DNA of 64,000 bases from assembly GCF_040938485.1 (NCBI RefSeq), contig NW_027271242.1, forward strand, positions 434,001-498,000, written 5' to 3'. A program made the translations under genes and the position numbers. Below are positions 33,839 through 57,908 of the stretch, piece by piece (position 1 is the stretch's first letter; each line of letters starts with the position of its first letter). The stretch is from Diadema antillarum. Its lineage: Eukaryota. Below the pieces are notes generated by a model. That model did no database searches, was not told the DNA's origin, and was given only the letters and a program-made list of their open reading frames with translations.

Positions 33839-36800
33839 CTATTCTAGGAGGGCGTACACGCCGTCGATGTCGGCCTGGAAGTGTTCCATGATGGCGTCAC
33901 GTCGATTCTTTCCTGTCGGAGTCAACAAACCGTCCTCGACGCTGAAGGGATGAGGCTGAAAGATGAACTCATTGACCTGCACGCAGTGAAATACCAATAG
34001 AATGGTCTTAATATTAGAAGTTCCCCACTGGTAGATATTCAATCCACAAAAATGTACCATCATTGCGCTATATCCAAGCTTTTTCACATTTAAAAAACAA
34101 ATGTCTCCTTAATACGAAAAGAAAGTTGTTCATAGCAATTAAGGAAATTAATGTAAAAGCACAAGGGTCTGTTTGTTTCATGTTTTATTATTTTCTGTTT
34201 GACTTTAATTTTCAAAATATAATGGTCAAGAAAGCCATAGCTCTGTACAGTCGGAGGATTGTCAGTCAAGCATGGCTATTGTGTGACGTGCTGTAGAGAC
34301 CACAAAATGTCTAGTGCAAGTGACGAACGTGATTTGTTCATTGCAGAAGCTTCTCGGTTGGTTTACAGAGAACAGAAGCTCTCTCAAAATGTATTATAAT
34401 CATGAATGAGTTGCCTCCATCTGTCTGAGAGAGAATGCTGAAGAGAAGTGTGCGAGAGGGTTAGGTCCACGATTATATCCTGTTCAAAGTATATAACAAA
34501 GAAATTGTTTCTGCCGAGGAATTCGTGGTGCATGGCATCATCAATGTCGACATCGAAACTGAGCATCAACGATACATGACGATGAAATCATATATAAAAA
34601 TCATAGGTCTTTCAAAGTGTCTGTAGAACGTAAATCATCAGCAAGCTTTCTTAGCGGTCAAAAATTGTCCAGCCTGTCATTGAATACCTTATGATATTGA
34701 TTTGATTCTCAAGGATCCATTGCATTTATTTCACATCAATCTGTAGACACAATTTTCAATTTGGATTGAATTTCAAAGTTGGATAAAACTACAAACTCAC
34801 AAATCGTTGAAGGAATTAAACTGTCTTTCAACTGATTGACAAATTGCCCTACATCGACGTAAATAAGCACTGAATTGATCAGTGTTTTAGTAGTAGCCAT
34901 GATAAAAAAATCATGGGCGTACATACTCGAGCAGGATTTGAACCTACGACCTCCTGATCACCGGACAGGCGTCATCTCCACTAGACCACCGAGCTTTCGC
35001 CCGACAGCAAGTGTTGGTTCTAATCCTTAAAGCATGCAGCGGGTACTGCTTTGTTATTCAAATTCATGAAGTTCTTCCGTCGAGATGTTTTCATTGCAAC
35101 TGATTGACAAATTGCCCTACATTGACGTAAATAAGCACTGAATTGATCAGTGTTTTAGTAGTAGCCATGATAGTGGCTACTAGCATCTAGTGGAGATGAC
35201 GCCTGTCCGGTGATCAGGAGGTCGTAGGTTCAAATCCTGCTCGAGTATGTACGCCCATGATTTTTTTATCATGAGGGGAGGGGAGGGGTGGGTGAAGAGG
35301 AAAAAACAGCTGAAATCAATAATGCCTATATACGATAAAAAGGCAAAGGTGGATGAAATGTAGCTTGATAAATGCAGGGAGGTGAGACGAAAATGGTCTC
35401 ACCTCCCTGATAAGATCAATGCCGCACTTGCCTTTTCAAAGTCGCAGAGTTCCAATCTTTCATAGATCTGATTCAGGTCAGCTTTCACTTCATTCAAGAG
35501 AATCTGTGAGGATGAGATAAAATATAATATTGCGGGAGCATTAACTTCATCTCTTCATACATAATGTTGCGATCGTCAAAAATACACATGCATGGAATCC
35601 ATCGCACACACCTAGCCGTCTATGTGCGGCTGATATGCTTGCACGTAAACAGGAGAAATATTACCCCTGGACAATTACTGTAGAGTCTTCCCCTGACCCT
35701 TACCCTAATCCTAATCCTGAAGCCTAATCCTAACCCTAACCCTACTAGCATTCACTCCTACGCAACCCTACCACCAACAGGTATTTAGCCAGGGGTAATT
35801 GTCGGGGGGGGGGGGGCATTATTGTCCTGACACGGACAGTGTCATCTTGCCACATTGCTTTCCTTTATCCTTCAGTGATTATCTTCTGAAGATATGAAAT
35901 ATCCACCTTGTTCAAATGGCACATTACAAATGCACACGTCTTTTTTAATTACAAACACGAGTGTATAGTCACTTAAACACACACACACACACACACATAC
36001 ACACAATTATGTATACATTTCAAGCCTATATACATTCACACTCACGTAAGCTTGCTCCCACACAGCATCAATTTCGCTCTGCTGTTAAGCTGTATTGCTT
36101 TTCATCGCAACACGTATTATACCTCCCATCAGGTTATTTACAATTCGGATAATTATATGTTCACAAAGATATAGGCCTAGGTGTCTAGGTATAAAGTGAT
36201 CTGTGGTCTTAGCAAAATGTGTATGATGTCACGCGTGGTGAACGAGCTCTCAGGGAAATAGGGCAGAATATAACCTAGAGAATGCTATTCAGCAAAAATT
36301 TGTTACGTTTCATTTACAGCCTTCAACCAACCTTGTCCTTGCACAGTTCGACGGGAGTTCCCGTGAGGTCGTTATTCTTGGCAAACGTCTCCAGTTCGTC
36401 TTCATCTGCTACGAGGACTGCGATGGTCTCTTTCTGGTAAATCACAGAAATGTATAAAACATAAAGAGGATGACAAGCAAGTTGATGAAAAAGGAAGAAA
36501 TGTTATGTAACATATTCACCATACTATTTATGTACAATTCGAATTCGCCGATTTATTTTCGTAAAAACTTGCATGGTTTTCGTCCCGAAGCCTTATTTGG
36601 ACTACAGTGTATTACTAGATTTACCAAGCTTGCATACATTGTATATAATTATGCATTTCGGTTCTTGGTATCCCTGCAGTTTCAGAGCATTATTGGTTGT
36701 TGATGCCGAGTATAGTCTATGGTAAAGTTTCTTCTTGTCAGAAACTTCAAGCCCTGTTACAATGTATTGGGTGTACGTAAAACATAAATATTTGGATAAA

Positions 36801-37116: not shown

Positions 37117-40100
37117 GTTATACATAATCACGAGGTCTGGAGGAAATTTTATGATGGCGTCGCGACAGCTCCAAAATATTACCTTTTGGTTATTTCCGTA
37201 GACGAAGGCTTGAGAAACAAAGCGACTTTTTGTCATGATGCCTTCAAGCCTTTCAGGAGTGATGCAATGCCCCTCAGAAGTTCTGTACATGTGCTCCTGG
37301 CGCCCGACGATCCTAAGCGCCCCGTTCTATAAGAATCATGAATTTTATAGAACCTTTTTATATTCATTACGTCAAGTCTGCGAGTTTACTTAATTAGACT
37401 TGGTTCTGATTTGGCTTTCTTTTGTTAATTTTCTTTCTGACGCAACACATTGATCACAACACAAATTTTTTTATTTCTTTTTTTTTTCAATAGAGTCTAT
37501 CACTAGGGTGAAATAACCAAGGAAACAAAATCTGCCCAAAGGTCATGTTTTGGGATACTTTTCTCACTTAAAGATGCAATGGAATTGAGATTTGTTTCAC
37601 ACAAGACCCAAGTCCCCAAAATGCTGCAAGGATTTAGGTTCTAGTCAAAATAACACCAAGTTGAATGGAAGGCTGGGGGACAAACATAGCCTGAACATTA
37701 ACTATGATACAGACACAACAAATGGAATATAACGCGGTAAAAATGGGGAAGAAAGAAAAAACAGGCGCAGGAGAGGAAGATATTGATAATCTATTATTAT
37801 AAGAATAGTCAGAGTGTCAGAGGACAGGTTATAAGCAGAAAGTATGCTAAAACATTTCCCGCTATATAAGGACTCATATACCGTACACATAAAGACGCTG
37901 GGTAACGGTACCAAATGTTCCCCAAACAAATAAAATAATATAATGATAAGAATGATTCATAATGATATATCAATGATAAAGTTCAGAAATCGTCACAAAC
38001 CAGTAACCACTCGCCAATGTCTCCAGTATGAAGCCAGCCATCTGAATCCCACGAAGCAGCGGTCCATCGTGTCTCTTTAAAGTACCCTGACGAGACGGCG
38101 GGACCTTTCACACAGATCTGGAGGGAAATTAGAAGAGGAGCAGATTAGCTCCTGTGAGCCACACAATGAAATTGATGGACATCAGATGTGTGTGTGTGTG
38201 TGTGTGTGTGCGAGCATTTTTGTAGGTATGCATGACTGTGTATAAGTGCACGAGTATTGTTAGACGGAAAAATCCTGCTTTTCGTTCGATTTGCATGTTA
38301 ATGAGATTATGAAGCCACTTGTATATGGCCTTTCCGGTCATGAAGTGTAAAATTGTAAGTTTGTTTTAATAAACGTAACGTATTTGAAAGGATTAATTCC
38401 TTTTATCGCCACATAGCAGCCTGTTGGTAGTAGATAATCAATTCATTATGAAACGTATAAGAGTGATTCGTTCAGCTGTCTGGCTGTGTCGGCAAAAATG
38501 GACAGGAATAAATTTACAAAACATTGTATCTCCTATTAGCAGAAACAAAAATTGTCATACAAGCATGACAACGTTAAAGAGAGAGAGAGAGAGAGAGAAG
38601 GCTTGATTTAAGTGTCAGTTTAAAGTATTAAAGCTAAGAGTAAGACTTGAATGAAAACGAGATGATTTGACAGCAGCCAGCCAGACTTGGGCGACATTTG
38701 TTATTCCGAGGGTTCCTTAATCCGAAAATAAATATAAGGTTTGCATAATTCCAGAGGTTCGTTATTCCGAAATCACAAATTCCCCATACCTATGAGTGTT
38801 CGTTAAATCAAGAATGAAAATAAAGGTTTGTATTCCAAAGGTTCGTTTATCTGAAAAATGAAGTAAGGTGCGTTAGTACGAAGGTTTGTTAATCCGAAAT
38901 GAAATAGGTTCGTTTATCCGAAAACGGAGAAAAGGTGTGCACTTACGAACCTTCGAAGCTTCCTAGTTATTTTCTGATTAACGAACCTTCGGAATAACGA
39001 ACCTTCGGGAATAACGAACTGTAACCGCCAACCTCACCTCGCCCTGGTCCTCCTCGGTCCGGTAGCCCATCTCCGGCACGTCGATTAGCTTCACGACGCA
39101 GCAAGGCATCACTGACCCCACGTGGCCGCTTTCCGTCTCCCCCGCCACTGTCCCGCTTATCACGCCACCAACCTCCGTCATCTCGTAAACCTCACTTACC
39201 TGCATATAGAAAACACATTATGAATATTTTATAGATTTTGATGTTCTTGGTCATGATGACAATGGCAATGAATTATCAGATTTGTAATCACAGCATACAA
39301 AATACAGAAATGTCAGTCGAGAGATACAAAAAATAGAATACAATGTCGTATAGAAAATACAGAAGTATGAAAAAACCACATACACTGACATAAAAACTAG
39401 TGGGAATAACGTTCATTGAAGGTTTGTGGTGATAAAGATGTTGGGTCAAGGACCAAACAGTTATGTTTTTCAAGCTTTGTAAAAGAGCATTAATTTTATA
39501 CATTACATTTAGAAACAAGCGAACACACACACACGCTAGCACACACACATACACTCACCAATCAAACAGTGCTCAAAGAACAGAATGATGGAACTTTTAT
39601 CTATGTCTTTTCGAGTTTATGCAAACGTTTTTTTTTTAAATCATTATTATTATGGTGTGCATAGTATGCGTTTCCAGAGAGTCTATTATCATTATAGGAA
39701 AGGTTGTGGACCACAGGGTCAAGGGTTTAACGACAAGTTGAAATAGTGTAATTGTATTTTCCTTATGTCATTATTCTCTGAAACGGTTCAAAGTATTTCA
39801 TAATGTTACGTTTCAGCGTTTAGGTGTTGTTTATTATGTGAGATCAAATTCTGGTGCAAAAATGTGCAATAATGATAACACAGAGTGTTGGTAAGATACA
39901 ATAGTGTATATTTGCTGGTTAGATATACGAGAGAGTGTGTGTATTAGTGGATTGAGAGTTAGAAGATAGAGAGAGGGAGAGAGAGAGAGATGTGCAAATA
40001 TCAAACGCTATTTTAGTATATAACCATGTATTATAATAATTCGAATATAGGATTCATTTATTTATTTATAGATTTGATGTAAAACGCTGTGTGTAGATTG

Positions 40101-43100
40101 AATGTATTTTGATATGAGAGTTCATGTTTAGGAAGAGAAGATTGTGAGAAAATATTTTTTTAATCAAACTGATTATTCTTGCTGTGTAAAATGTGTTGAT
40201 TTGAGCTGTATAACAACATCTGTATTAATAAGTATAAATGACCGGCATATACAATTAACATTAACTCAATTTATTTTTTAACAATTATTGAGAATAGTGA
40301 TATTGCAAAATTGTGATTGTAATATTTGTTTTTGCTTTGTATTATAGGTTGATCTCATTGTGCAATGGTTAAGATGAATAAGATTGATTTTTTGCTGTTC
40401 TATGCATTTTTTTTTCATTGCTACGCTGTATCTTGTGTGTATTTTTAATGTATTCATTTTGTTTACAATGTCTGTAATTCAGCCTCCGGGCTGCGATGGA
40501 TATTGATGAATAAAACTCCTTTTCAACCTTCAACCTCTTCAACGTTATAGTCTCACAAAGCTATAGACAATAAGGGTGTTGAAGGAGGCCTATGTTGATG
40601 GAGTTGTGATATTACGGAACATACCGGACATCCACAGACCACTCGGAGAAAGAGCGAGATTTCGGGAGGGATAGATCCTCCACCGGACAAGATCCACTTC
40701 AGCTTTCCCCCAACAAGATCCTGTGCGATTGAGATGGTAAATAATATACATGATTATGATCAAGGTATTTTTTTATTTGGTTGTTTTCACTCGTCAAAAA
40801 AATTCATGTATATTCCACATTGGAGAGTTTGTAACCACAGATTTTCATTTCTCAACGCCAGTGATGTTATGACATGATACACAATACTCACCTTTATTAA
40901 TACCATTCTGAAAGGCCCATTCAAAAAAGTGACAAAATCTGGGAAAAAAATGTTAGTGTTCTATAAACAAATTATGCAGATTGTTGCCTATGAGGAGTAT
41001 GTCTGGAAAGCATGACGCAAAGAGTCAGGTGTATTTATAAAATTAGCAACTATACCTTCCAATAGCATTAAGGATGAACATCTCCACATTGATAAGAAAC
41101 ATATACAGATTCTCCACGTCAACAGACTGCCTTCTTAGAAAAAGAATAAATATATGAATACACATACATATCATGTGTGTCACCTGTCATTACGTGAAGA
41201 AGAAATGTTGAATGTAATAGATATAAGATTATGACTTCAAATAAAAGTCATTTGAATAGATATAAAAGCTGCGTGAAACCTTACCTGGAATTTGTTGAAG
41301 ACGAGTGTGTCACTCCACGTGTCTCTCCGGAGCACATCACTGTAAGATATTCACAGAAATTTTGTTATTTTTCATCTCGGCCAGGTTTTCAGCCTTTAGG
41401 AAGAGAGCTCATATGGTACAATATAACTTATATAACGCACCATAACACAACACCATTATCGTCATTGTAAGACAGTAGTCAAGAGAAACCGGGAAAACGT
41501 TGTTATTATAAACATCCTACCAGTAGATCATTTCATTTCCTTTTGAGTTTTTTCTTGTCATCTATTCTACATCTGATGTATCATTGGCCTTTTTTTTTTT
41601 TGGAGGCGGCATTGACCTATTACTAAGTACTTATCTTTAAAATGCTTACCGCCATTTTCATTTGGTTCATGTTCACACTATGATGAAATTCCATACGATG
41701 CCAAAATACCAACAAAAACTGCCCTGTTCGTAAAACAATTTATTAGAGCATTGACTCCCCGACAAAGACCCAGGGAATGAGCTAAGAAATTAATAAACAA
41801 CGAAAACCCGTCATGAATAGATAAATTACCTAACAACAAGACGTAATGCACAAAAGGAAAAACGAAGACTGAATAAGATTAATTCAACTTTTTCGCTGCA
41901 GCAAGCTGTACCAGTCGTACAGCAATACAGCATCGAGAACAATTTTTGCTAGCAAAAAAAAAAAATCAAAGTATAAAACTTTCATGTAAGCAATAAACTT
42001 CTTTAGGGCAAGCTTGCATTTCTACTTGTTTGTCAATGTCTTACTCATTGTAGGCAATGAGTCCACTAATCTATTTCCTCCCCTTACTCACTTCTTGGCG
42101 TCTGTTTTCTTGTTGTCGAAGGCCCAATTGATCATCGCTCTCTGGAAATACGACGATGCTCTCATGGTTCCTATGATCTGCAAATTTTGATGATATTTGG
42201 TTTAAAAAACCTGTATGTTTCTACATCTGTGCACACTTTTGCAACTCTCCTATAGAAATTTGGTACTAAATCTGACCCAAACTGTACTGACTCAACTACA
42301 GGTCAAACATGGGTGTGAACCTAGACAGTTCTAGCTGCTCGTCTGCTTTTTATTATTGTTATGTTTTCAATTGGACTCGAACAGAGTGCATCTACTACAA
42401 GTGGCTAGTACCATCAAGTGTGGAACAAAATGTTGAGCTTGATGCGATCGTGGTTGAACTTCTCGGACCCTCTGGTTAAAATTCACATCGCACGACCAGT
42501 GCTTCTTACCTGTAATTCCATAATGACTACATGCCACTTTTTGTTTGTTGGCAGTGCTTACGTCAGAGATGATGAGTCAAAAAAAGTTCAATAAGAAAAC
42601 AACTGGAAGCATATGCGAGCATGGAATACCGTGCACAGTTGCACAAAAGTAAACGTCTTTTCAATTTAGTGTGATCACTCTACTGATAGATAGCTCGAAC
42701 TAATCAGATAATTATTTTGCATGGTTTACATACTCGGAGTAAAAACAAATGACAGGACGATACCAGAATATACGTGGATGCGTCTCAAATGATGACTAGG
42801 CCTATATCGGTCAAACAGAGAGAAATTGATACAACCTATGGATGTATAAGCTTGCATTCGAGATCGATGATATGGGTAGCCTTTATCACGTCCTTTCTAT
42901 AGACTCGGAAAGGAGAATGACGGGAATATAAAACATCAATTTTCATATTGAAGCCAATCAAAGCGTCCACAGCGTGGCATGTTTTCTTCCTATCATAAGC
43001 ATTTATCCAGATAAAAGTCAGTGCAAATCAGAGTGGTTTGTGTAACAATACCTGACGATATGAAAGGATAGGATAATATCACACAAACCTCGTCATAGAG

Positions 43101-46100
43101 TCGAATAACCGTCCTGTGGTCGCACGGAATGAAGTCGGGCTTTAGCTCTTGCATGTCTGCTAGCAGATCGGACGTGTTCCCGCGGGAAAACCCAACGGAC
43201 CCTCCTCGCGTCATGACCAGAGTCTTCGCGAACGAGACAGAAGAGAAAACAATAAGCTAAACGTGTGCGTAGATGATTGCTTTTAACATTATAGTAACAG
43301 TATACTCAGAACGAAATTTGATCACAGTCATTGTTACTGCAAATTTCATCACATTTTCATATCAATATCATACCGAGGCATCACCATCATGATATTTTCA
43401 AACTTGAAAACCAAGTGACTTCATTCCATAAAATGGTAACACGTTCGTGCAACTCTTCTGATTTTACTGTAAGTTTCTTTCCATTCTCTTGCATAGGTGA
43501 GACATTTCCTCTCAACTTTCAATATGGCACTATTTCAACTATCCAAAATTCCCATCCTTCAATTTTCCGATCGTACAGCTCTTCCTATCTTCCAATCTTT
43601 CAACATTCGATTCAACATCTTTTGTCAGTCTTTCAATATTTAAGTGTTTCCCAGCTTTAAATCATCCTATCTGTTAATATTTCATTCTTCCAATTTTCCA
43701 ATTGTATTAGTCTTCAGTTATTCCAATCTGCCAATCTTTCAAGCTTCCAATATCCCTGTCTTCTATGCAGTCTCACCTGTACGGTGTGCTCATATCGCTG
43801 CGCCAGTGGAAGAAATGATATGCTGACACAACCAGACGGGAAGGCATAGATTGTCTGAAATTCACAGGAATGCAAAAGAGAGGAATGAAACATGATCAAA
43901 CTATTTAAAAATTCTCAATTTGATGCACCTGCGAGAACGCCATCTCTAGATTTTCACAAAATTGGGAAACCAAGCAGATATGTTACAAATATTTACACCA
44001 AACGTTTTACGCACGCATTGACATTTTGTGCCACTTTATTGCTTGGGATCATTGTTTCCAAATTCATTAACTGTATATTTTCAAGTGATATGATTTACAG
44101 TAGTAAACAAGAGTCATTCATTTTCCTTGCTCTTGTCAAATACACTTGAGTGCTTGGCATCTACTTTGTTTCCAAAAATTGTTGTCATACTCTAACAGGC
44201 AAGCCCTGGGCCAACCTTCTTGTTTTCAGACGAACAGAAAAAAAAGGAAAACGAGGTATTCAAGTGAATAATCCCTGTTTGTAGGAATAAGATGATAATG
44301 TGGGATGTTCGTGAAGAAGTGTTCCAAAATCACATTTTGGTGACCTATAGCTTGCCAGTGTTATTCTTCATTCATCCGCAATACGTACACCTATCCTTGC
44401 TCCTATATAATGGCGGTAATTGTGCACAAGATTTTTCTGTTACTTATTAGGCCTCGTTTGTATCGGCGTCAATTCTTCATTATCCACACTCGGACTGACA
44501 ACCTTGAAGCTATATAGCTCCCAAGGCACAGACATTTATAATGGTTCTCGGGTCCTTGAACTGTTTTCCGATAATATAATTCGTTTCTGACAAAAAGGTG
44601 CCGCTCTTGCCAATACAGGTGGTCCAGAAGCAAGGTAATCCGTTAATTATTTCTTTCTCCCTGCGCCCTTCCATCACCTTGTCTTGTCCAGCCATGTTCG
44701 CGTAAACGCAGACCTGTGCTTTTATCATAAGGCAGGCCAGCGAACCCCGATGATCTATTTTCACACCTTTCTTCGCTTCATCGTTTTTACATCAATTTCA
44801 TAATCAGGTAGACTTCATTGTACCTTTACTTTACGTCATATCTCGTTAGTCTTTTCGTGTTTACATAAGGATTTCTTTCTTCTGGGAATTTAATTATCAT
44901 AAAGAGTTTTAATCAATAATAACGGGGGTAAGCAAGCGTGGTAGATAGAATGTATTGTTATTGGCTGCCAGACATACCGATTGATAAGTAATTAAGCATT
45001 GTTATAAACGATTGCTAGTATCGGATTAAGTTCTCTATGTGTAATCATCTATTAATCAGTGCATCTGTTTTCATGTCTATAGATATAGATATACTATTTG
45101 ATTAAATCGGGCCAGTTTGTATTCCCTATAATGTGACTGGAGTTCCTGGCCTATAGCTGATGGACAACATAGCCACTTTGAATTGAAAAGACGAGTCTCA
45201 CCCATAGACACGCCAGCATAGCTCCACTATTTGACATGATGTTTCCGTGCGTGATATTTACACCTTTGGGCATACCTGCAGCGAGAGAAATTTGCTATCA
45301 TTGATCTGTTCTGCGAGGGCACTGGGAAAATTGATTATGACATTATTTAGGAATTATAATTAAATTCATTGTAAAATTTGATAAGGAGAACGGCGTTATG
45401 AAGAAACAGCATAATAAGCAACGTATACACAATGATAATAGCAAGAATAGAGATAGTAATCATTGTGAAAATAATACCATGTGATGATTACGATCATAAC
45501 ATTATTAATGATGTAATGCGCACGTTGCAATTCAGATTGCAAAGCTGTAAAAATTAAAACATTGGCAGAGAAAAGGGAAATTTTCGGAGTAGCCATACAC
45601 TCAATAAAACGTACATAAGAATACAACAACCCCCCCCCTAGAAAAAAATAATAAGTTAGGCATATTTATAGTAAAGTGGCAGATAGATACCTGTTGTACC
45701 GCTGGTGTAATTAATCATCGCAAGGTCCTCCGGCTTACAGGGCTATCAGACACGAGATAGAATAAACAACACATAAATGAATTAGAATATACTTCCTTAG
45801 AACATTAAAATCAAACTAATCTTAACTTATGGATTATACATTTTAGGCGAGTATCACCATGATCATATTAAATATCCATTACTAAGTTGTTGCTTTTTTC
45901 TTCAATCTCGTATTTGAAATACTGTACATGTAGCTATATACAAAGCTTTAAAATTCAAGTCAACCTCGTCTTGGTTGTCTGACGTAATTCTAAGGGATGG
46001 ACTTCAAACGACACCCTCATCTGAAATGAAAATAATGAAACATAGTTCCAGATAAAGATAAATGATATGCGTTTCGACAGTTTGCTTGGTATATAGTTTC

Positions 46101-49100
46101 TATCAAAGTGACAGCAAACATTTTAACCACCTGCCTATCAAGTGAACGGTATAGACGTGCCAGATATTAATCAAACAGTGTATTATAGGGTTTTACACAG
46201 ACACCTAATCATAGTACAGGGTTTTACACAGACGCAAAATTATTGGATATTGAATATTGGAGATCTCCCTCGGTTAGGTATACCCTATACAAGATGCAAT
46301 TTCAATTGGAGCCAACCATCAATGCGCGGCATATTCTGACAAGAATGCCACCAGCAGCGACATCATCGTTATCAATAATTGGTGCAACGGCCTTCGGCTG
46401 ACGTCATAATCATTATTCTCTTAACTGACATTAACTTTGCTGACATTCAATTCAATTCAATTTATTTTCGACAAAAGCATATAGACATCACTTTTTTGGT
46501 AACAGAAAATAAAGTGCGTTAAACTATATAAGATGAAAAGAGTGTACAGTATTGTATAACCTTAGAAGAGGTAAAAATGACAGTTTTTACCTCTATTATT
46601 GTACCTCTACTGTTGTCTTTACTGTTAATATCATAAACATTAATGTTTCGCTAATGACTTGTGATAATCTTATCGTGGTTTCATCCCTATCTCTGATAGT
46701 CTCTTTCATACACAATGACTCAGGTTATTCAGTTTGTAATTCTTTTGTTTTGTTTCGTTTTGTTTTGTTTACTTTTGGTCGGTTTTACATGGGATGAATA
46801 TTACTCTCTCCATAAGAATAGGACCTGCTCGTCATGTTCGGGATGTTTTTTATAAGCATGTCTTAAGGTGCCTCAACTCACGGTTGGTTCTCTGGAATTT
46901 GCAAGTCCAATGGCGAGCAGTTCATCGAACCCCAGCAGGGTGATTCCGCTGTCTCGCGCCCGGTCTCTGAGCTCCTCGGAACCAGCGGTTTCCATGACAA
47001 CGATGTACTTTAACGTCATAAGGTACTGACAGAACTCCAGGAGTTCCTTGACTTTCGATAGAGTGTCTACCACAACTAGCTCCATATCAGCTGTCGAAGA
47101 GAGTTAGATTATTTTGCGACTAATTCTATTACAAGTTTACAGCTCTTTGCAAGTGACAAACAAACCATCACCAAAAGTACTTGTAATCTCAAAAGGCATG
47201 ACACGAAAATGTATATACGATTAGATTTGATTTAAGAAGCTTCCGAATCATATGGAATCAGATAAAGACCATGTTGCTATTGATGTATTCTCAGTCAGTA
47301 ATATCGTTAAAATTAGAATACAAAAAGAGGAAGGATTCTATGTTCATTATATCACATCAATTGTGCCCACACAGTAGTTTTTGCTACAGACGGAATTTCT
47401 TGTTAAAATCCTTCTAACAGCAAACTTTATGAATAATCAAAATAGGAAATGAAAGAGAAATGACTATAAGGAATTCCGAGAAAGGAGCTGTTGTAGCTCA
47501 TTGTGTATGGCAAAAGACTGTCAACGAAGAGATCCCTGATTGTCATCTGGTTCATCCCCGAGGCAAGACATTTTTTACTCATTGCCTAAAATCTCTGGAG
47601 GGACATTATAAAGCCGACACTTCGGTCCCGTGGTTGTTCCCTTACAAATGGTAATTGCTTTCACAGCATCCACAAAAAGACGCATTACCTGAATTCAATC
47701 AATTCATTTCAACATAAAGATGAATGACATATTTAGGTGACACAAGAATGGCAAGTATGCATTAGTGTTGCAGTCTAATTCATTATAGGAGATGGAGGGT
47801 GAAAACTTCGTTTATAATACAACGAATTGACACTGAAATCTACATAATCGTACATTGTGCCCTCGTTGTCATTAAGTGAGTTGGGTAAAATCATTTTCTT
47901 TTTAAATCACTGCTCGTTCTGCCGTACACCCTTTGAGGTTAGCACTCTTGCTTGAACAATAAAATACTTCTATAGGGACTTGTTCGTTCGTTCTATATCC
48001 TCATTACGCTTCAAAATGAAGAAATCTGCATGCAATATTTTACATGTACATCATATACGTGGACGCATTACTTTTATTCAACTGTGAGACATGTATAAGT
48101 ATAATTACTATCAAAACAGTCGACACAAGTAACTTCTTCGGTAATTGGTTATAACGGAATCACTTAATTGACTAACGCCTTTGCTTCCTACCGACCGATT
48201 GTTAAGGTAGAATGAAATTATGTGTTTCATTTAGATGAATAATATGATATGATAAATATTGCATTACCTGCGTTTGATTTCTCTCAGCTGTATGTGCGCT
48301 TCAGGAAAAAAAAATCTTAAATATCTCCCGCAGGGATGTGAAGTTTTATATTACACCAGTGTTATAAAAGGCAATGATAATAAAATCTATGTATCACTAG
48401 TCAGTTGGAAGTCATACGTTAAAGTTTACTCACTTTGATTAATGATGTACTGCCATTCTTCTCTCCTGAGATTGCTGTACAGAGGAACAGTTACCATGGA
48501 GAAAGTGACGCAGCCAAGGTCGGTGATCACCCACTGCGAGAGAGTACTTCCGAGTCAGTCAAACTTTTCAAAATACGTTCACGAGAGTGAACGTATACCG
48601 TGTACAACATTGATAGATAGATCAGGGAGGTGCTAGAGAAGGAGAGACAACTACTGCTCTCCTTTGAAGTCATGCGCGGCACCGCCGAGAAGTTATGCGT
48701 TCAACAACAGGTGTTACCCATGTGCTTTGACAAAAGAGAGCATCAATAATCGGGACTAGTGCTCTCACATCTAGAAATTCGCTCTTTCTTTCAATGTGAT
48801 GGCAACAATGAACTTGTGTACCTTGAATTGGAGCAGCGAATCAAAATGCAGTGTAAAACTGACGATTTTAACAGCAAATAGTTTAAAAGCATGCTGGAAC
48901 ACGCTTTAGCGGAGTACTTTATTTAAAAGATCAAAATATCCCAGATTAAAAGATAGAATATTAACATGCGGAAATGTGCGCATTATAGAAAAATATCAGG
49001 TTTTTAAGAGGGCCTAATTTTCATTTCATTTCGATTTGCGCATTACGAAGAAAGTAGAAATACATGTTTATACTATTGAATTCTTTCCTAAACTATTCTA

Positions 49101-50633
49101 AATCAATTCAAGTATTTCATTTGAAATTTAACGGTGAAATAAAGCTTGTAATTCAACGAAAGGTGAAATGCGTTCTCCGTCTCCGAACTTCGTCTTGCCA
49201 CTAGAGCGGTGCAGAGCATGACTTCAAAGCGTAGTGGAATGCTAGACATCCCATTGTAACGCCTTGGACCCAAACATGTGTTTGCATGAATTCCAAAGAG
49301 TTGCCACTCCATCTCNNNNNNNNNNNNNNNNNNNNNNNNNNNNNNNNNNNNNNNNNNNNNNNNNNNNNNNNNNNNNNNNNNNNNNNNNNNNNNNNNNNNN
49401 NNNNNNNNNNNNNNNNNNNNNNNNNNNNNNNNNNNNNNNNNNNNNNNNNNNNNNNNNNNNNNNNNNNNNNNNNNNNNNNNNNNNNNNNCATATGACTAGG
49501 CAGTTCACACGGATTTGAGATAAATCTGTCTGTTATTGATTCAGCGATGATTTTCACTTCTAAACTGCATTCAACTTTGCTTGGCCAAAACTGCAGATCG
49601 TTGAAGCTGAACTCGCTTTGAATTCAGCGTTTCAGTTGAATCGGCATAATCTCCACAACGCCTTATCAAGCGATGCAAACGATTTGAAACAAAAAGGGAC
49701 AAATACCTCGACTTTGCTAAACCATTGTCTTTAGTACACACATTGCTACAACTTTTTACCAGATAAGAAAAATGTGAATGTGAACCTCACACTTACCTTC
49801 ATAGATTCCTACAAAAGTGCAGTAACAAACTAGATTTAAATCTTCATGCGTCATGAAAGTGCCTTTTAATTCTTGATGGTCACAGCATTTGTTTATCGTT
49901 ATATAAATTCTGTAGTATTGTCCTCATGATGTGATTTGAAAACATCTATCATCAATGTAGCCTCTGTCTGGCCATTCTTTACACTTAATGCTGTATTTCT
50001 TTCACTGTTTCTTGTGATGAATAAAGCCGTTGCTGAGCCCTTATAACCCCAAGAACTTATGTAGTCCGGAACTTTGATTAAATTGATTTTGGAACAGGGT
50101 ACTCTCACATAATCTTTCATGGCGGATCTTTCGACCACAGAGGTATCAAAAGGTTGATCAGAGCCGTATAAACTAAAGCAATTAGTACGTGCTTTCGAGA
50201 GTATAGGAAGCCAAGAACTCACGACAGAGCCATCAAGCACTGGCGTAGCCAGGGGGGGGGGGGGGGGGGGCGATGGGGGCGGTCGCCCCCCCCCCCCTAA
50301 GATTTGGACCGGGGATTTGGGAGGCGGAAAAAAAAAATGCGTGTATACTGTATGCATGCACATACATTTCACTCAAAAGTGTGCACCAGATCGTTGAATT
50401 TCAATTCAAAATATGCAAAATCTCTCGTGCTTGGGAGGGGGTATCCCCCTCCCAAACCCTCCCCCTCTGTGCCTCTTTCCCTAGCTAAGTACACTTTTTA
50501 GATTTACAAAAAATTCTGAATAATTCTGAGTGCACAAGACGTATCACTTATATTCCGAAAACTGAAGGTTCCCTCATGTATAAGGGGAATTTCCCCTTTT
50601 AATCGACCCTTTCCTCCCTCAGCCCCCTCCCCC

Positions 50634-50664
<31 letters not shown>

Positions 50665-52582
50665 GGTGATTTCCCAAATGTTGATTCCATCAAATATGCG
50701 TATACGAGATATCTCAATTTCAACCTTAAAAAGATAAAAGCTCCATGGGAAGGGAAGGGTGGAGATAACACTCGCCCACGCCTTCTCCCTGCTCGCCCCC
50801 CGCCATGCAAAGAAGTAGACTGTGGCTATACCCAGATCGCTTTATTTCAATTCTAAAAACGCAAAAGCTCCGCGAGCGGGAGGGGAAATCCCCCTTCCCC
50901 TAAGCTCTACCTCACTAGACTTTATACATACGCACAGATGGTGCACATTCGGAATAAGAGCTAAATTCCGTGATTTTAACACTTCGATGAAAAAGTATCG
51001 CACCAAAAATTTGCACCAGATCGCGGAATTTCAGGTCTGAAAACGCAAAATCACCTTCGTGTGGGAGGGGATATGCCCCTATCTACACCCTCGTGTGCAT
51101 GCTTTTTCTGTTTGATTGCTGAACAGACAGCGTTCATGATATTCAGTGTAAGAATTGATACAAGAAGACTAGTGTATTCATATTATACCATTTCATAGGC
51201 AAATTGTTCAATAATAATCTACACTAAAATATACTGCAACCTTAAACAAGTGGGACTGTTTCAACTCGTTAAAACACGCAAAAACATGCATCAAATTGCA
51301 CCATTTGCAACATCAAAATGCAAAAAGTTCTCACCGTGGGAGGGGGGACACTCCCCTCCCACACCCTCCCCTCCCCCCTCGCTCGGGTTCAGACGCGTTC
51401 ATGATATTCAGTGAACAGAATTAATGCAAGAAGTGTATTTAAATTATACCATTTTATAGGCAAATTGTTCAATAATAATCTACACTAAAATATAGTGCTA
51501 CCTTAAACAAGTGGGACTGTTTCACGTCGATAAAACGCGCAAAAACGTGCATCAAATTGCACCATTTGCAACATCAAAATGCAAAAAGTTCTTACTGTGG
51601 GAGGGGGGACACCCCCCTCCCACACCCTCCCCTCCCCCTCGCTCGCTCCGCTCGCTCGGGTTCAGTCGCGTTCATAATATTCAGTGAAAAGAATTGATAC
51701 AAGAAGTGAATCTAAATTATACCATTTTATAGGCAAATTGTTCAATAATAATCTACATCAAAATAAACTGCTACCATAAACAAGTGGGACTGTTTCACGT
51801 CGATAAAACGCGCAAAACCATGCATCAAATTGCACCATTTGCAACATCAAAATGCAAAAAGTTCTTACTGTGGGAGGGGGGACACCCCCCTCCCACACCC
51901 TCCCCTACCCCCTCACTCGCTCCGCTCGCTCGGGTTCAGTTGCGTTCATGATATTCAGTGAAAAGAATTAATACAAGAAGTGAATCTAAAATATATACCA
52001 TTTTATAAGCAAATTGTTCAATGATTATCTACATCAAAACGAACTGCCACTATAAACAAGTAGGACTGTTTCACGTCGATAAAACGCGCAAAACCATGCA
52101 TCAAATTGCACCATTTGCAACATCAAAATGCAAAAAGTTCTTACTGTGGGAGGGGGGACACCCCCCTCCCACACCCTCCCCTACCCCCTCACTCGCTCCG
52201 CTCGCTCGGGTTCAGTTGCGTTCATGATATTCAGTGAAAAGAATTAATACAAGAAGTGAATCTAAAATATATACCATTTTATAGGCAAATTGTTCAATGA
52301 TTATCTACATCAAAACGAACTGCCACTATAAACAAGTAGGACTGTTTCACGTCGATAAAACGCGCAAAAACATGCATCAAATTGCACCATTTACAACATC
52401 CAAATGCAAAAAGTTCTTACCGTGGGAGGGGGGACACCCCCCTCCCACACCCTCCCCCCCTCGCTCGCTCCGCTCGCTCGGGCTCGGTCGCTTCGCTCCC
52501 TCGCAGACTAACCGCCCCCCCTAAGATGAAATCCTGGCTACGCCATTGCCATCAAGTAACGCAATTTGTCCCCCTTCCGCCC

Positions 52583-52634
<52 letters not shown>

Positions 52635-55183
52635 ACCACCACCACCACCACCACCACGAACACAAAGAAGTTTAAACAAGGAAAAGCATCACCTGTTTAT
52701 TAACGGTTTTCCGAATAAAGTAGTGCCGTTAACTTGTAATTAGTACTAAAAGACGTCTCTTTGGAAAAAAAAAAAGGGGGGGGCAAATTTTGGCTCAGCA
52801 TGTAGACTCTTTGAAACATATGCTGTTCATGTGCTTGGAATAGAAATTAAAGCAATGGGAGCTATCATAGACCTATACTCTAGTCACCCTGTCAAAATTA
52901 GTGTTGATTGTGTCCCACAATTTTTGCTCTTTTGCAAGACTATAAAAAAAAATCAGATATCATAATATAATATACTTCTAACAATATTACAATAAAATAA
53001 CATAAACATAAGATATGAAAGAAAGTGCCACTTTTGGTCAGTGTCAATATCACATTTCACAGTTTAATGTCTGTGCATCCCTGTGATATTTTCTCATGGA
53101 TAACGCCAACAGCGGTCAAGTCAAAGTAGCCTATCATAATACGCTTTCATGCACAATATTGTTAACTGACGTGGAATCGACATTTGAATCCGCGACAACA
53201 TCGAAATAGTTTATCACGCTCTGGCTTTCAAAGGATTTAAGCCCGAACAGTCACCAATTGACACGGTGTAAATATGGAGAAAAGCCCTAAAGAACTGAAA
53301 CGTTGGGGATAATGCAACCATGCATATTGTATGGAAATACAATATACTGTGTGGATGAATGATTTGGCCGCCACTGAGATCCTTCGGGGCATTTGTTACA
53401 CATTTTGGATTATTCTTGGCAAGGTTGCAAGCCAGACATACATATTTTACCTTGTCAATTTGACTTCAGGAAATTGTTACATGCATGTTTTCCCATCATA
53501 ATTCAATTGTATTGGGGATTAACTGAGTTCACAGAAAGGTGCCTGTGAATGAAATTGTTCGTAAGAGTTTGTTTATAAATAACTTTGTTGTATAATAATA
53601 CTCTATTGGTCACTTTCTACTTTCATGACTCTCAGCTGTTTATCCGCAGCTTCTTCAGAATGATAAAAGTGTGTATATCATGACCTTGTTAACAAGGGTC
53701 CTATTGGCTCTTATAGCGTATAAAGCTTTCAGTGGGTCCGACGCACAATATTGTATACTATGATGGCTTTGTCTTTTCAAATCTGCTTTGTGTGTTGAAG
53801 TAAATAACATGGGGTGACATACTTTTTGAGGTTACACGTAGTAATGAGGAAACCTTGAAGGTCTTACCTCAGGGCGATTGTCACTGAAGATGCCGATCTT
53901 CGAGTCGCTTGAAGGCGCGAACCCCTTCTCGATGAGAGCTGAACCAAACTGCTGTGCCCTCATGCGGACCTGCAGTTGCAATGTTGGGCGGTTTTAGTCA
54001 TGACCGTGAATTGCATTCAGTCTTATGTTAACTATAGGCCTATTTCAAATTATTTCTGTTGTAGTTTTCTGTTTTACCTTTCTTGCACATACACATCAAT
54101 ATCATAACACTGTACGAATGAAACTGACGACGATGATGATGACTGTCCATCGATTTCGACAACGACTGAGACAGTTCCTCTTGTGTCTTTAAATCATGTT
54201 CATAGTCATGATACAACAATATACTGTCAGGTTGACTATACATCTGCTACTATATATACACGGCAACTACTGATAATAGTAATAATAACGATGATATTAG
54301 TAATGATGATGATAATAACAAAACGATACAAATAATTAAAATGATTTTATTAATGACAATCAATGATAACAACAATAATAAAGACAATAATGATATTGAT
54401 AACGTAAGAACAGACAGTATATGTAAATAATGTGCATGCGTACATTGCAATTAAACCGTGATATCTTTGCAGATACCGTGACCTCCTTAGTTGGTCTAAT
54501 TTGCCGAATATTTTTCATCTAAAAGTCACAGAAATAACAATGGCAATGCATGAGGGATGGGCTTCGTCATTTGTAAGTCATAATGCAACTTATCTTAACT
54601 TACGATCCAAGAAAGATGATTCATCAATATTGATAGGTCGTTGCATTTCAAACAAAACATTTAAACCTGAACAGCCACAAGCAAAGCGTCATTTAGGAAC
54701 ATAGTTATCGTTAAATATCTTTTAACGTGACGCTGTGGTAGAAAACGCTTAGCCCGGTTTACAGCTGGATTAAGAGTCTTAACATTCGAAAGTTTCGAAC
54801 TTTTCTGTATGACCTTGACATAATTTAAGATAACTGGTTTATTTCGAACTCGTGGATTAAAATGGGGCACAAACTGCATTCTTTGTCACGATCCGTCGAA
54901 AACTCATTGAAAAGGATACAGGTACTGTGTGTTCGTGAAATGCTACCCACTCTTAAACTGCTTAAGTCTTTTGTTTGCGACATGAGTTGATTCATCCAGA
55001 ATCTTGCATTAGACACAAATACGAAGACAAACAAAGCAAGCAGTAATGTAACATCATTCATTATCATGCTTCGATCGGCCGATCATTACCATTTTTTTGT
55101 TGTAAACAAACAGAGTTTAAGTTGACACAACACCCACAAATACAAATGTCATTAGAATATCATAGTAACATGTGTGTGTGTGT

Positions 55184-55214
<31 letters not shown>

Positions 55215-57908
55215 AGTGTGTGTGTATGTTTACAAACGTCAATATCCATACCTCGAGATATGACATCCATTCGTAATGCTTCTCCCCACGCGGTCTCCAA
55301 CCCAAGCAAGGTCCATTGTCTGTATACATAATGAGAACAATTAATTTGCGACTTGTACATTATCTTTATACGGTTTTCCCCTTTTTACCAGTTTCATCAT
55401 TTTTTTTTAACTTACAGTATACCTGCAAAAGATGATAACATTATTGCTTTTCACTTGATATGGACATAAACTACACCAATGTGGATCGAGTTGTTAATAA
55501 AGACAAATGACACAGAGCGCAGCTTTTGCAACTAAACGAGTGAGGGGGAATTATAGTTATGATACAATATAGTGCTTACCGAATGAAAGCAAAATAAAAA
55601 AAAAAAGAGAGAGAGGAAACGGAATACTAAAGACAGACGGGGACTGAGGAAGAAAGTGGTTTGTTTTTTCTTCATTGTTATTATTTCTGACAGACTTGAC
55701 TGTACGAGGGGATACATTGTGAAGGGTTATAGTCCCGGAACACTAGCATGTGCTCAATTTTGAAATCAATATACTCCCTATATTGATTATCAATTTTTGC
55801 GAGGTGCCTGAAACATTAAAAAAAGTATTTTTATTTCAGAGTCAGAAGCACACAAAGCAAAATCAGAAAAAAAAACATTCTTAAAATGGGATCTCCAACA
55901 GAAGCAATCTTGTGAGAGAGTGACCCTATTGTGCATTAGTACACTATTTGAAGATTATGTAAACTCAAACTTGCAGAAGTTAAAAGAAAAATGTTCAGGA
56001 GATCATAAAAATGCTAAAAACAGATTAAAGTCATGAAGGTATAATAAAGAAATGAGAAAGAAGCTGGAGGACAGACTACAGGTCAGTGAGGCGACAATAC
56101 AGTGTATATGAAAAAAAAAATCTAATCATAAGCATTAATTATTGTTCTTTACCTACCAATGTATACGATGGGACATATGCCACTGTCAATGTATTTATGG
56201 TATATGGGCCTACTTCATTACATGAAGTTATATCAGTTAGATATAATATAATCTTCCCACAATTTTAAGCATTAAATTTTGACGTAAAGTTAGCCCTTGA
56301 TTGTAAGTCCTTCTAATATCCTATTAATTTCTGTCTTGGTGTCAGAAGCAACATCAACACCAACAAATATTTTCGCCCTTTCTTTGGAGACTATGGAAAT
56401 CGAATCAGTATACATTAAACATTTCAACCATTTTATTAAGGGTTAGGATTTAACGACTTTCAAAGGTTTGCAATTTTTGTGAAAAGGTGATCGGAATGAG
56501 GATTATAGTCCTTGGATAGAATTCCCCTTTCTTTTATATTATTTAAAGATTTACACATTCCTCAGCCAGAACAAAACAATGAAGGAAAGCTTTATGTTTG
56601 ATACACTGAACAGCGGAAGGCTTGAATGAGCAAACCAGAGACTGTGCATTCTGGACGAACTCGTTCTGTGCAATTTGTGGAGCATTGTAAGCGTAGATTC
56701 ATAGTATAACTTAATGCATTACACTGCAAATTACAGGAAATCATACATAATTATTGAATGACAGCTGCTATAGTTAAAGGACATTGCTTCCAAGTTCTTA
56801 CTGGAAGTTTGCTCTCCCCTTAGAAATCCTTCGTATGTTGTGGACGCATCGTCGTAAAATTTGTCCAGGTAGAACTCCTTTCTTACGAAGTTGGATATCG
56901 GCGACACGTGAATTCGTTCGGGTCCCTATTATGGGAGAGTACACAGGAGTACATTCGTCACATTATGTGTAAAGGGGCCGGGACTAGGGACAAAATAATA
57001 TCTGACAATCTCGAAACGACTTATGGATCCATTCACACATAGAACTGAAGTACTTGTAAGTTATTTGCAACAGCCACAGCTTTTACTGTTTCGTCTACTT
57101 CATTCCACCACCGCTAACGACGTTATAAACTATTATTCTCTAAATTTCTTCCTTGTGTACTACAACTATATCACCCCTTGGCTACCAATGTACCAACAGG
57201 CATTACAATCTGGTAACTATATACTGTCAGCACTTCAGTTGAAGTTGAAGTTCATTATCTATATCCACATGTTTACATGGCATATACAATACATAACAAA
57301 AGACATATGCATGAATACAGAAAATAGCATGAATGCTAATCGAGTCCGATACCTGCCCTGTCTGATACAATAGGCGTTTTCACATCAGCCCGATAAAAAT
57401 CTAAGCTCGAGATATTTTTCGCAGAAAATAGTCAGCAAAACAGCGCGCTATTTCAAAACATCGGGCTGATGTGAAAACGCCTATTGGTTCTAAAAAGGCA
57501 ATAAGTACAGTGCAGTGGATAGCTCTACGTAGTTTGAAAATACATGAAACATGAACATATTTACAAGCATTTATTCTGCCATGGCTATACACGATCCAGT
57601 TTTTTGGTTTGTCTGCTGCGTCAAGCAGACAAACCTTCTTCGACCTCAAGGTCATTTCTAAACTTCTGGGAGAAACGAGGGAATTCAATCATAAAATCGG
57701 CCTATTTGTATACATTGTCAGAAGGCCTATTATTACGATGAAGTCACTTCGGGTGACAGATTTCTGGATATAACGCTGCATGGTCCGCTTTGGACCACAA
57801 TGAAGGTGATATACATACATCTGGGTACACCGACTGCTGATCCAGATCAATGACTTTCTTCGTGAAGGGGTGCATCACTTCTATATTATCGTCCGAAGTT
57901 TCTGCCAT
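33839..57908 (-). CDS. ACSL: Long-chain-fatty-acid--CoA ligase, ACSL1/5/6-like, divergent paralog, about 667 aa
   Basis: 19 coding exons: 57819-57908, 56802-56925, 55252-55319, 53868-53969, 48434-48533, 46882-47090, 45691-45742, 45202-45275, 43777-43854, 43089-43223, 42092-42177, 41285-41339, 40625-40720, 39038-39199, 38001-38117, 37183-37326, 36332-36433, 35432-35503, 33839-33976 (2004 nt, frame continuous to TAG; last intron GC-AG). Motifs [51 protein letters not shown] and GLLTPTGK are present. The start Met is the least certain part. Confidence 0.92.
34829..35273. mobile_element. tRNA-derived SINE, one intact-head copy plus one copy with an inverted head
   Basis: Minus-strand tRNA-like head 34924-34994 with A box TGGTCTAGTGG and B box GGTTCAAATCC, continuing into a non-tRNA body. 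The head is repeated inverted at 35186-35273 and the body is repeated directly (34829-34904 and 35097-35172). Confidence 0.72.
35650..35835. repeat. Degenerate MITE-like element with telomere-like (CCTAAC/CCTAAT)n tract
   Basis: CCTTACCCTAATCCTAATCCTGAAGCCTAATCCTAACCCTAACCCTA at about 35698-35744, bounded by GGACAAT/ATTGTCC-type inverted motifs. Confidence 0.45.
38690..39026. mobile_element. Non-autonomous DNA element built of GTTCGTTATTCCGAA repeats
   Basis: Multiple GGTTCGTT(A/T)ATCCGAA units in both orientations. Ends GGCGACATTTGTTATTCCGA and TCGGGAATAACGAACTGTAACC are imperfect inverted repeats. Confidence 0.6.
43530..43752. repeat. Degenerate pyrimidine-rich minisatellite (TCTTCCAAT-like units)
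   Basis: Recurrent TTCCAATC/TCTTCCAA/ATTCCAA units just inside the intron downstream of ACSL exon 9. Confidence 0.5.
49316..49488. other. Assembly gap (173 N) in ACSL intron 4
   Basis: Run of N. The flanking exons join as ...DNRPE|WVITD..., colinear with ACSL homologs, so no coding exon needs to be hidden here. Confidence 0.97.
50238..52548. mobile_element. hAT-type non-autonomous transposon (2.3 kb) containing a 5-unit ~275-bp tandem array
   Basis: TIRs CACTGGCGTAGCCAGG / CCTGGCTACGCCATTG; perfect 8-bp TSD CCATCAAG (50230-50237 and 52549-52556). No transposase ORF. Confidence 0.88.
51132..52485 (+). repeat. Tandem array of five ~265-276-bp units
   Basis: Units begin GTTCAT(G/A)ATATTCAGTG at 51132, 51397, 51670, 51944 and 52220. 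The duplicated ORFs at 52021 and 52297 are 276 bp apart. Confidence 0.92.
57371..57483. mobile_element. Small palindromic MITE
   Basis: TAGGCGTTTTCACATCAGCCCGAT ... ATCGGGCTGATGTGAAAACGCCTA, a perfect 24-bp inverted repeat; in ACSL intron 1. Confidence 0.8.

Follow-up and report, generated by a model that had tools for sequence, protein, structure and literature searches.

Long-chain acyl-CoA synthetases (ACSLs) are among the most conserved enzymes of lipid metabolism in animals. A 64,000-nucleotide stretch of the genome of the sea urchin Diadema antillarum (contig NW_027271242.1, positions 434,001 to 498,000; here called the window) carries an ACSL gene in which several family motifs have been replaced, and the question that it raises is whether the encoded protein still performs the reaction of its relatives. 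This divergent copy descends from ACSLs, is intact, is under purifying selection and keeps the adenylation core, and its changes are concentrated at the wall of the acyl pocket, the A4 gate and the A8 hairpin. Judged from its sequence, it probably no longer does the standard ACSL job. It may be an active adenylate-forming enzyme that has departed from the ligation of long-chain fatty acids to coenzyme A (CoA), with a changed substrate, a changed second half-reaction or both, a proposition that we consider evenly balanced between right and wrong. In the literature, no such paralog was found described in echinoderms, nor was an ANL pseudoenzyme of this kind.

Gene model and family membership

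The gene model was assembled by stop-to-stop scanning, enumeration of splice sites and comparison with homologous proteins. The divergent copy lies on the minus strand of the window (about 37% GC, eukaryotic) from 57908 to 33839, and its 19 coding exons form an open reading frame (ORF) of 667 residues with 0 internal stops. The original prediction had placed a full 19-exon ORF at 37183-45742. The ORF exists, but that interval takes in no more than exons 7 to 16, whose outermost bases are its ends, and so only the part from the P-loop to A8. Each of the motifs quoted in the prediction was found on the minus strand by direct translation, and the P-loop, TGDIG and A10 Lys are retained as it had stated. 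The features, in window coordinates, are as follows.

33839-57908, minus strand: whole gene (splice-aware model), with the stop codon at 33841-33839.
57819-57908, minus strand: exon 1, start codon and residues 1-30; an ATG-to-GT ORF whose N-terminus resembles those of P0151 and P0152; present in RefSeq model P0362.
56802-56925, minus strand: exon 2 (splice-aware model).
55252-55319, minus strand: exon 3, identical between haplotypes; left out of P0362.
53868-53969, minus strand: exon 4 (splice-aware model).
48434-48533, minus strand: exon 5 (splice-aware model).
46882-47090, minus strand: exon 6 (splice-aware model).
45691-45742, minus strand: exon 7, first half of the P-loop (YTSGTTG); 52 nt, as in paralog A; only synonymous changes across three Diadema sequences.
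45202-45275, minus strand: exon 8, second half of the P-loop (MPKG); 74 nt, as in paralog A.
45709-45692 and 45273-45262, minus strand: YTSGTT and MPKG, the intervening Gly codon being split by the junction of exons 7 and 8.
43777-43854, minus strand: exon 9, A4/gate motif at 43818-43786, with Gln292 (43800-43798) for the invariant His.
43089-43223, minus strand: exon 10, motif at 43145-43113 with Val-Pro changed to Asp-His, and Arg336 (direct translation).
42092-42177, minus strand: exon 11 (splice-aware model).
41285-41339, minus strand: exon 12 (splice-aware model).
40625-40720, minus strand: exon 13, SGGGS at 40687-40673, including Ser407 (direct translation).
39038-39199, minus strand: exon 14, A5 motif VYEMTE at 39190-39173, Glu429 at 39184-39182; Thr431 and Glu432 kept (direct translation).
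38001-38117, minus strand: exon 15, A6/A7 fully canonical, TGDIG at 38027-38013 (direct translation).
37183-37326, minus strand: exon 16, remodelled A8 hairpin at 37311-37261; Arg525 and Gly535 kept; His536-Cys537 at 37269-37264 (direct translation).
36332-36433, minus strand: exon 17 (splice-aware model).
35432-35503, minus strand: exon 18, followed by a GC-AG intron (splice-aware model).
33839-33976, minus strand: exon 19, A10 motif TPTGKNRR, Lys645 at 33910-33908, and the stop codon (direct translation).

All acceptors are AG and all donors are GT, except for the GC donor of intron 18 (35431-35430); this GC-AG intron is kept in both D. antillarum haplotypes and in D. setosum. For comparison, the canonical Diadema paralog A (P0152 at locus L002; in D. 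setosum, P0365 at L007) was rebuilt exon by exon. The lengths of the internal exons of the divergent copy (124, 68, 102, 100, 209, 52, 74, 78, 135, 86, 55, 96, 162, 117, 144, 102 and 72 nt) are identical to those of paralog A in the two species. A run of N at 49316-49488 falls within intron 4, and no exon was lost across it because the junction of exons 4 and 5 is contiguous when compared with the canonical proteins. The possibility that the exons are chance ORFs was rejected.

By descent, fold and Pfam assignment, the divergent copy belongs to the ANL superfamily and, within it, to the ACSL1/5/6 lineage. Two RefSeq models of the gene, P0001 and P0362, stood in for the 667-residue protein in database searches. 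P0362 scored 151.8 bits against the Pfam AMP-binding family (PF00501; gathering cut-off 29.9), with single exons matching weakly, and the Pfam models of the C-terminal domain no longer gave a match. The AlphaFold model, which represents P0362 without exons 7 and 8, has the ANL fold (mean predicted local distance difference test score, pLDDT, 77). Its top Foldseek matches were A domains of carboxylic acid reductases (CAR), luciferases, the Thermus enzyme LC-FACS (a synthetase of long-chain fatty acyl-CoA, 1ULT) and 4CL, with E = 1e-20 to 1e-29. The closest relatives of P0001, 43-44% identical, are canonical urchin ACSLs of about 660 residues from Lytechinus, Strongylocentrotus and Diadema; its identity to crinoid, brachiopod and vertebrate ACSL1/5/6 proteins is 31-39%, and the full-length divergent protein shares 46.5% identity with Diadema's canonical copy. 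Searches were also run with the A5 exon. The sole match by phmmer in the PDB, SLC37A2, was discarded as spurious, and a word search with that exon alone gave no match, a result that the length window of the search makes uninformative.

In trees calculated under a site-heterogeneous model, the divergent copy is nested in an echinoid-only ACSL clade with support of 100/100, in agreement with the original prediction of an intact ACSL paralog. Paralog A (Diadema, Lytechinus) and paralog B (S. purpuratus, L. pictus) fall in it too, and the divergent copy forms a trichotomy with them. From the same node its stem measures 0.92-0.96 substitutions per site, compared with about 0.3-0.4 for A and B, and is roughly 2.5-3 times longer. 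No canonical B from Diadema turned up in the homolog search, and the divergent copy may be either an ortholog of B that evolved fast or a third copy. It has been seen so far in the genus Diadema only. On the D. setosum chromosome OZ188190.1, the divergent copy (L005, 29.40 Mb) and paralog A (L007, 38.32 Mb) are about 8.9 Mb apart on opposite strands, a shared location that hints at an old intrachromosomal duplication. The lists of neighbouring genes differ between the divergent copy and paralogs A and B, and a tblastx comparison of the window flanks with 10-kb stretches flanking paralog A (Diadema, Lytechinus) and paralog B (S. purpuratus) brought up a repeat and nothing else.

Residues replaced and residues retained

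Conservation was measured against 127 ACSL1/5/6-type proteins. Of 41 columns conserved at 100%, 8 are replaced in the window protein and 0 in four canonical urchin proteins. Among the 87 columns conserved in at least 98% of the sequences the count is 17, as against 0-1, and among the 138 conserved in at least 95% it is 30, as against 2-4. The 17 replacements in the at-least-98% columns are G151R, H292Q, V334D, P335H, K356Q, A406G, P407S, G429E, D524G, K527E, K531R, L532T, Q534E, E536H, Y537C, K542R and S562N. The residues lost are nearly universal in the reference set: His292 occurs in 117/117 sequences, Pro335, Ala406, Gly429, Lys527, Lys531 and Glu536 in 127/127, and Val334, Asp524 and Tyr537 in 126/127. 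The alternative that such motif changes are common in invertebrate ACSLs was rejected, with 0/127 proteins carrying them; the original prediction is supported on this point. Its list of near-invariant substitutions stands for the 17 of 87 columns but not for every motif that it named: LKPD and YEH are common to the canonical sea-urchin paralogs, and SGGG and GR are nearer to the general adenylate-forming consensus than are the ACSL-specific TGAAP and DR, with TGK leaning the same way.

The A8 hairpin (residues 524-542) holds 8 of the 17 replacements (Fisher p = 5e-5, for an interval picked after inspection of the data). Eight of its 11 highly conserved columns are changed, and Arg525, Gly535 and Glu541 are kept. 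In place of the hinge-side DRKK, D. antillarum has GRQE and D. setosum has GRQK. The fatty-acyl-CoA-synthetase signature is intact in its first part; its C-terminal part and the A8 hairpin (IIDRKKxIFKLxQGEY) are changed. Three features that define canonical ACSLs are thus absent, namely the A5 Gly (Y-G-x-T-E), the A4 His (LPLAH) and the A8 half of the signature. The residues retained include the P-loop TSGTTGxPKG, Tyr428, Thr431, Glu432, the A6/A7 segment, Arg525, Gly535, Lys645 and Arg648.

The roles of these positions can be read from characterised relatives. Across 374 class I adenylate-forming enzymes, the residues Glu328, Gly384, Asp418, Arg433 and Lys524 of the Thermus LACS are invariant, and they hold Mg2+, ribose and ATP (PMC6122825). 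When mapped by motif register, all five are present in the divergent copy as Glu432, Gly476, Asp510, Arg525 and Lys645. During adenylation the A4 residue, His or aromatic, touches the anhydride or the alpha-phosphate, and it gates or narrows the tunnel for pantetheine; the A8 Gly lines that tunnel, and the residue at index 650 contacts the alpha-phosphate of AMP and lines the active site (PMC6122825). In the same alignment His536 and Cys537 correspond to indices 649 and 650, which are Glu-Tyr in ACSLs and adjoin the retained Gly535.

The Gly two residues before the A5 Thr (index 487) lies at most 4.5 Å from the myristoyl chain in the Thermus enzyme, and the position is Gly in every group surveyed except the short-chain acetyl-CoA synthetases (PMC6122825). 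The acetyl-CoA synthetase Trp forms a wall that limits the pocket to acetate, and its replacement by Gly admits C3-C7 and branched acids (PMC6122825, PMC10455477, PMC8383264). In the divergent copy this position is Glu429. The original prediction had treated the Gly-to-Glu change as a clash in the adenine pocket, but the position walls the acyl pocket, being Trp in acetyl-CoA synthetase and Gly in medium- and long-chain enzymes. Glu429, as read from the motif register, would therefore block the acyl pocket and bring a negative charge into it rather than mainly disturb the adenine pocket.

The rewritten motifs are in part fixed and in part variable within the genus. VYEMTE, LAQRYEH and a 10-residue motif are identical in all three Diadema sequences. 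However, 5 of the 25 sites that vary within Diadema are columns that are invariant in canonical proteins (151, 336, 407, 527 and 562). Residue 336 (codon 43115-43113), Arg in the window, is Ser in the other haplotype of the same individual; at residue 407 (codon 40675-40673) the window has Ser, whereas the other haplotype and D. setosum have Pro. Both columns are invariant in the 127 ACSLs. Between the species, Glu527 is replaced by Lys in D. setosum, which keeps the canonical residue, and Arg151 by Ser.

The canonical copy is itself slightly atypical. At about residue 252, paralog A (P0152) has Gln (PKGAMTLQKT), where 121/127 ACSLs have His after the P-loop.

Selection, haplotypes and the P-loop exons

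A phmmer search with the TGDIG exon retrieved the 529-residue P0001, which is 100% identical in that exon, and the 90% cluster of P0001 held two further models, P0362 (607 residues, D. antillarum) and P0363 (485 residues, D. setosum). The locus of P0362 (L006, GCA_040938485.1 contig JBFRCO010000354.1) is the window contig, and its exons are 100% identical. According to the paper on the D. antillarum assembly, both haplotypes of one individual were retained, and 12 RNA-seq runs were used in the NCBI annotation (PMC13511894); these include runs from gonad (SRR24973326, SRR24973327), esophagus (SRR29948272), coelomic fluid and body wall. The locus that carries P0001 (L001) is therefore the other haplotype. 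In this second haplotype and in D. setosum (L005), all 19 exons and their splice sites are intact, with no stop or frameshift. The D. setosum ORF of 665 residues is shorter because of a 6-nt in-frame deletion in exon 1.

Between the two D. antillarum haplotypes, the ratio of nonsynonymous to synonymous change in the divergent copy (dN/dS, here pN/pS) is 0.11-0.17 at a dS of 0.04-0.06, with 9 amino acid differences; 9 of the 34 differences are nonsynonymous (binomial p = 3e-10 against neutrality), and mismatch is 1.7% in exons compared with 4.1% in introns. Between D. setosum and D. antillarum, dN/dS is 0.09-0.15 (dS 0.13-0.17; 19-23 differences in 665 residues). The canonical paralog A compared between the same species gave 0.13-0.16 (dS 0.14-0.16; 30 differences in 660 residues). 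These ratios indicate that purifying selection acts on the divergent copy at least as strongly as on the canonical one, with no decay, and the original prediction's own caveat of a decaying gene is removed. The two Diadema species are in total only 0.027 protein changes per site apart, so that most of the 0.9 stem would have arisen in an earlier, accelerated phase; over distances as deep as the echinoids, dS is saturated. The pattern is consistent with a burst of protein change followed by purifying selection, the timing of which depends on outside divergence dates.

The three RefSeq models differ from the 667-residue ORF. Their 5' ends are mutually discordant and begin at different exons, which suggests weak transcript support: P0001 is without exons 1-3, and P0362 is also without exon 3 and extends 17 nt into intron 2. 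Furthermore, all three skip exons 7 and 8, an in-frame segment of 126 nt that encodes the P-loop. This bears on the original prediction's own caveat that cDNA might contradict its exon translations, although evolutionary evidence says that the exons are coding. In both haplotypes and in D. setosum, the ORF and splice sites of exons 7 and 8 are intact, and across the three sequences there are 4 synonymous changes and 1 replaced codon (roughly p = 0.03), the replaced site being variable among ACSLs as well. In exons 1-3, 3 of 282 nt differ between the haplotypes, compared with 11.5 expected at the intron rate (p = 0.003). Fourteen junctions of the gene model agree with P0001 and P0362. Additionally, in the AlphaFold prediction for the isoform without these exons, confidence collapses precisely where they are skipped, at residues 215-233. 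Because of the matching junctions, the identical exon lengths, the low divergence of exons 1-3, the conservation of exons 7 and 8 and this drop in confidence, the 667-residue protein was taken as the conserved product, and the RefSeq isoform as an incomplete or alternative form. The RefSeq models of the divergent copy would then be incomplete in two Diadema species.

Several features surround the gene or lie in its introns. Divergence between the haplotypes is uneven: the introns of the gene differ at 4.1%, and the aligned flanks, both sides pooled, at 1.6%, and BLAST blocks are 96.7% identical at 25.6-34.7 kb and 94% identical at 57.5-63.7 kb. In intron 18, at about 34826-35273, matches of 79-88 bp to the other haplotype occur in both orientations, which suggests inverted copies of a small repeat, possibly resembling a miniature inverted-repeat transposable element. 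Intron 4 contains a tandem array of five 276-bp units (51130-52491) that are 92% alike and appear as repeated pseudo-peptides in the ORF scan. The neighbours are an inorganic pyrophosphatase (Pfam PF00719) downstream, below about 27 kb, which is kept in D. setosum, and a DUF4659 protein upstream, above about 58 kb.

Possible activities and known enzymes

If the divergent copy is an active adenylate-forming enzyme, its ATP and adenylate machinery would be that of its relatives, since the P-loop, the A5 Thr-Glu, the A6 Gly, the A7 Asp, the A8 Arg and Gly and the A10 Lys are retained; we infer that the protein still adenylates a carboxylate. Glu429, at the Gly/Trp wall position, would shorten the acyl pocket and make it negative, and Gln292 takes the place of the A4 His, the residue in contact with the anhydride and the gate of the pantetheine tunnel. 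A long-chain fatty acid that enters the canonical tunnel would be an unlikely substrate. During the CoA step the A8 hairpin swings into the active site; in the divergent copy it is rewritten, with His536 and Cys537 at positions that would face the adenylate, and the CoA step may well be altered. The likely outcome would be a different carboxylate (shorter, polar or cationic), a modified second half-reaction, or both.

Several points weigh against such an activity. The P-loop exons are skipped in every RefSeq model, and should that isoform be what the gene really makes, the binding of ATP would be severely impaired. Since about 80% of the highly conserved columns survive in any case, the retention of the catalytic residues is not statistically decisive, and the clustering in A8 was calculated for an interval chosen with the data in view. 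The variation within Diadema at canonical-invariant sites looks like loss of constraint rather than retuning at those motifs. Moreover, the divergent copy is known here from genome sequence and predicted models alone.

The possibility was considered that the protein is a pseudoenzyme, with the ANL fold and perhaps the binding of nucleotide or lipid preserved, catalysis lost, and a binding, scaffold or regulatory role, possibly as the P-loop-less RefSeq isoform. This reading would be favoured if that isoform is real. It would also account for the replacement of Gly429, His292, Lys527, Glu536 and Tyr537, each nearly or fully invariant among the 127 ACSLs, for the polymorphism of the canonical-invariant positions 336 and 407 between haplotypes, and for the missing Pfam matches in the C-terminal domain; purifying selection fits a non-catalytic role equally well. 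However, after about 0.9 substitutions per site the skipped exons keep their ORF, their splice sites and a perfect TSGTTGxPKG, and their few changes within Diadema are mostly synonymous. All five superfamily-invariant catalytic residues are kept, the exon-skipped model loses confidence at its junction, and the discordant 5' ends point to weak transcript support for the RefSeq forms. A pseudoenzyme is therefore a doubtful explanation, if one to be taken seriously.

An ordinary long-chain acyl-CoA synthetase, that is, a fast-evolving isozyme in which the changes are tolerated or compensated, would be in keeping with the ACSL descent, the identical exon structure and the retention of the adenylation core, the A8 Gly and the A10 Lys. 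SGGG, GR and the acidic hinge have likenesses in other active ANL enzymes, the canonical Lys527 is still present in D. setosum, and active enzymes without Gly at the A5 position exist, with Ala in oxalyl-CoA synthetase and Trp in acetyl-CoA synthetase. However, the A5 Gly is near-universal and adjoins the myristoyl chain (PMC6122825), and a Glu should both obstruct and charge the pocket. The 17 replacements in 87 near-invariant columns, as against 0-1 in the canonical urchin copies, and the lengthened stem also argue against an unchanged function, and this explanation is unlikely. Least of all is to be said for a decaying duplicate or an artefact of annotation or assembly, to which the truncated and inconsistent RefSeq models might point but which is barely credible, and a pseudogene was rejected outright, as there are no stops, frameshifts or lost splice sites in two haplotypes and a second species, dN/dS is 0.09-0.17 and, between species, equal to that of the canonical paralog, and exons diverge less than introns.

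For the active enzyme, one specific mechanism can be proposed, although it must be called very improbable as it stands. Glu429 might draw in a short or positively charged carboxylate, which would be adenylated, and the acyl group might then be passed to an acceptor other than free CoA. Cys537, helped by His536, is a candidate acceptor because the pair directly follows the A8 Gly, where the corresponding residue of relatives contacts the adenylate in the second conformation. If this were true, an animal would possess an ANL enzyme that is self-thioesterifying (E1-like) or uses a new acceptor.

Of the closest known systems, paralog A (XP_071503714.1, P0152; in D. setosum XP_072165747.1, P0365) is of the same echinoid clade, with 19 exons of identical internal lengths. 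The two proteins are alike in their length of about 660 residues, in having no N-terminal transmembrane segment, in their location on one D. setosum chromosome and in their present-day dN/dS. However, paralog A keeps LPLAH, VPR, the Gly of YGQTE and IIDRKKHIYKLSQGEY, all of which are changed in the divergent copy, so that substrate-pocket and CoA-side positions have been rewritten and the ATP core kept under a constraint as strong as that on the canonical sister. Vertebrate ACSL1, ACSL5 and ACSL6 belong to the same subfamily by search and tree, and have in common with the divergent copy the P-loop, the first two-thirds of the signature and the A10 Lys. It differs from them in the low identity (31-39% for P0001), in being without an N-terminal membrane anchor and in the replacement of their invariant His292, Gly429, Lys527, Lys531, Glu536 and Tyr537. 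The wall of acetyl-CoA synthetase (Trp414 in Salmonella, Trp416 in M. thermautotrophicus, Trp439 in C. neoformans) is likewise a side chain two residues before the A5 Thr. There it is Trp, whereas the divergent copy has Glu in an ACSL scaffold, with an effect on the pocket that would follow from the motif register only.

Firefly luciferase, the fatty acyl-AMP ligases, the A domains of carboxylic acid reductases and the amide bond synthetases combine a conserved adenylation core with an altered C-terminal domain or A8, as the divergent copy does, and these ANL enzymes with a changed second half-reaction are its closest solved structures by sequence and fold. Unlike them, it shows no insertion, extra domain or carrier protein, and the likeness points to a possible route, not to membership. 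An inactive divergent copy would provide a clear-cut case of a selectively maintained ANL pseudoenzyme; an active one would amount to nature's own experiment in the retargeting of an animal ACSL scaffold, comparable to the transition from acyl-CoA synthetase to luciferase in insects.

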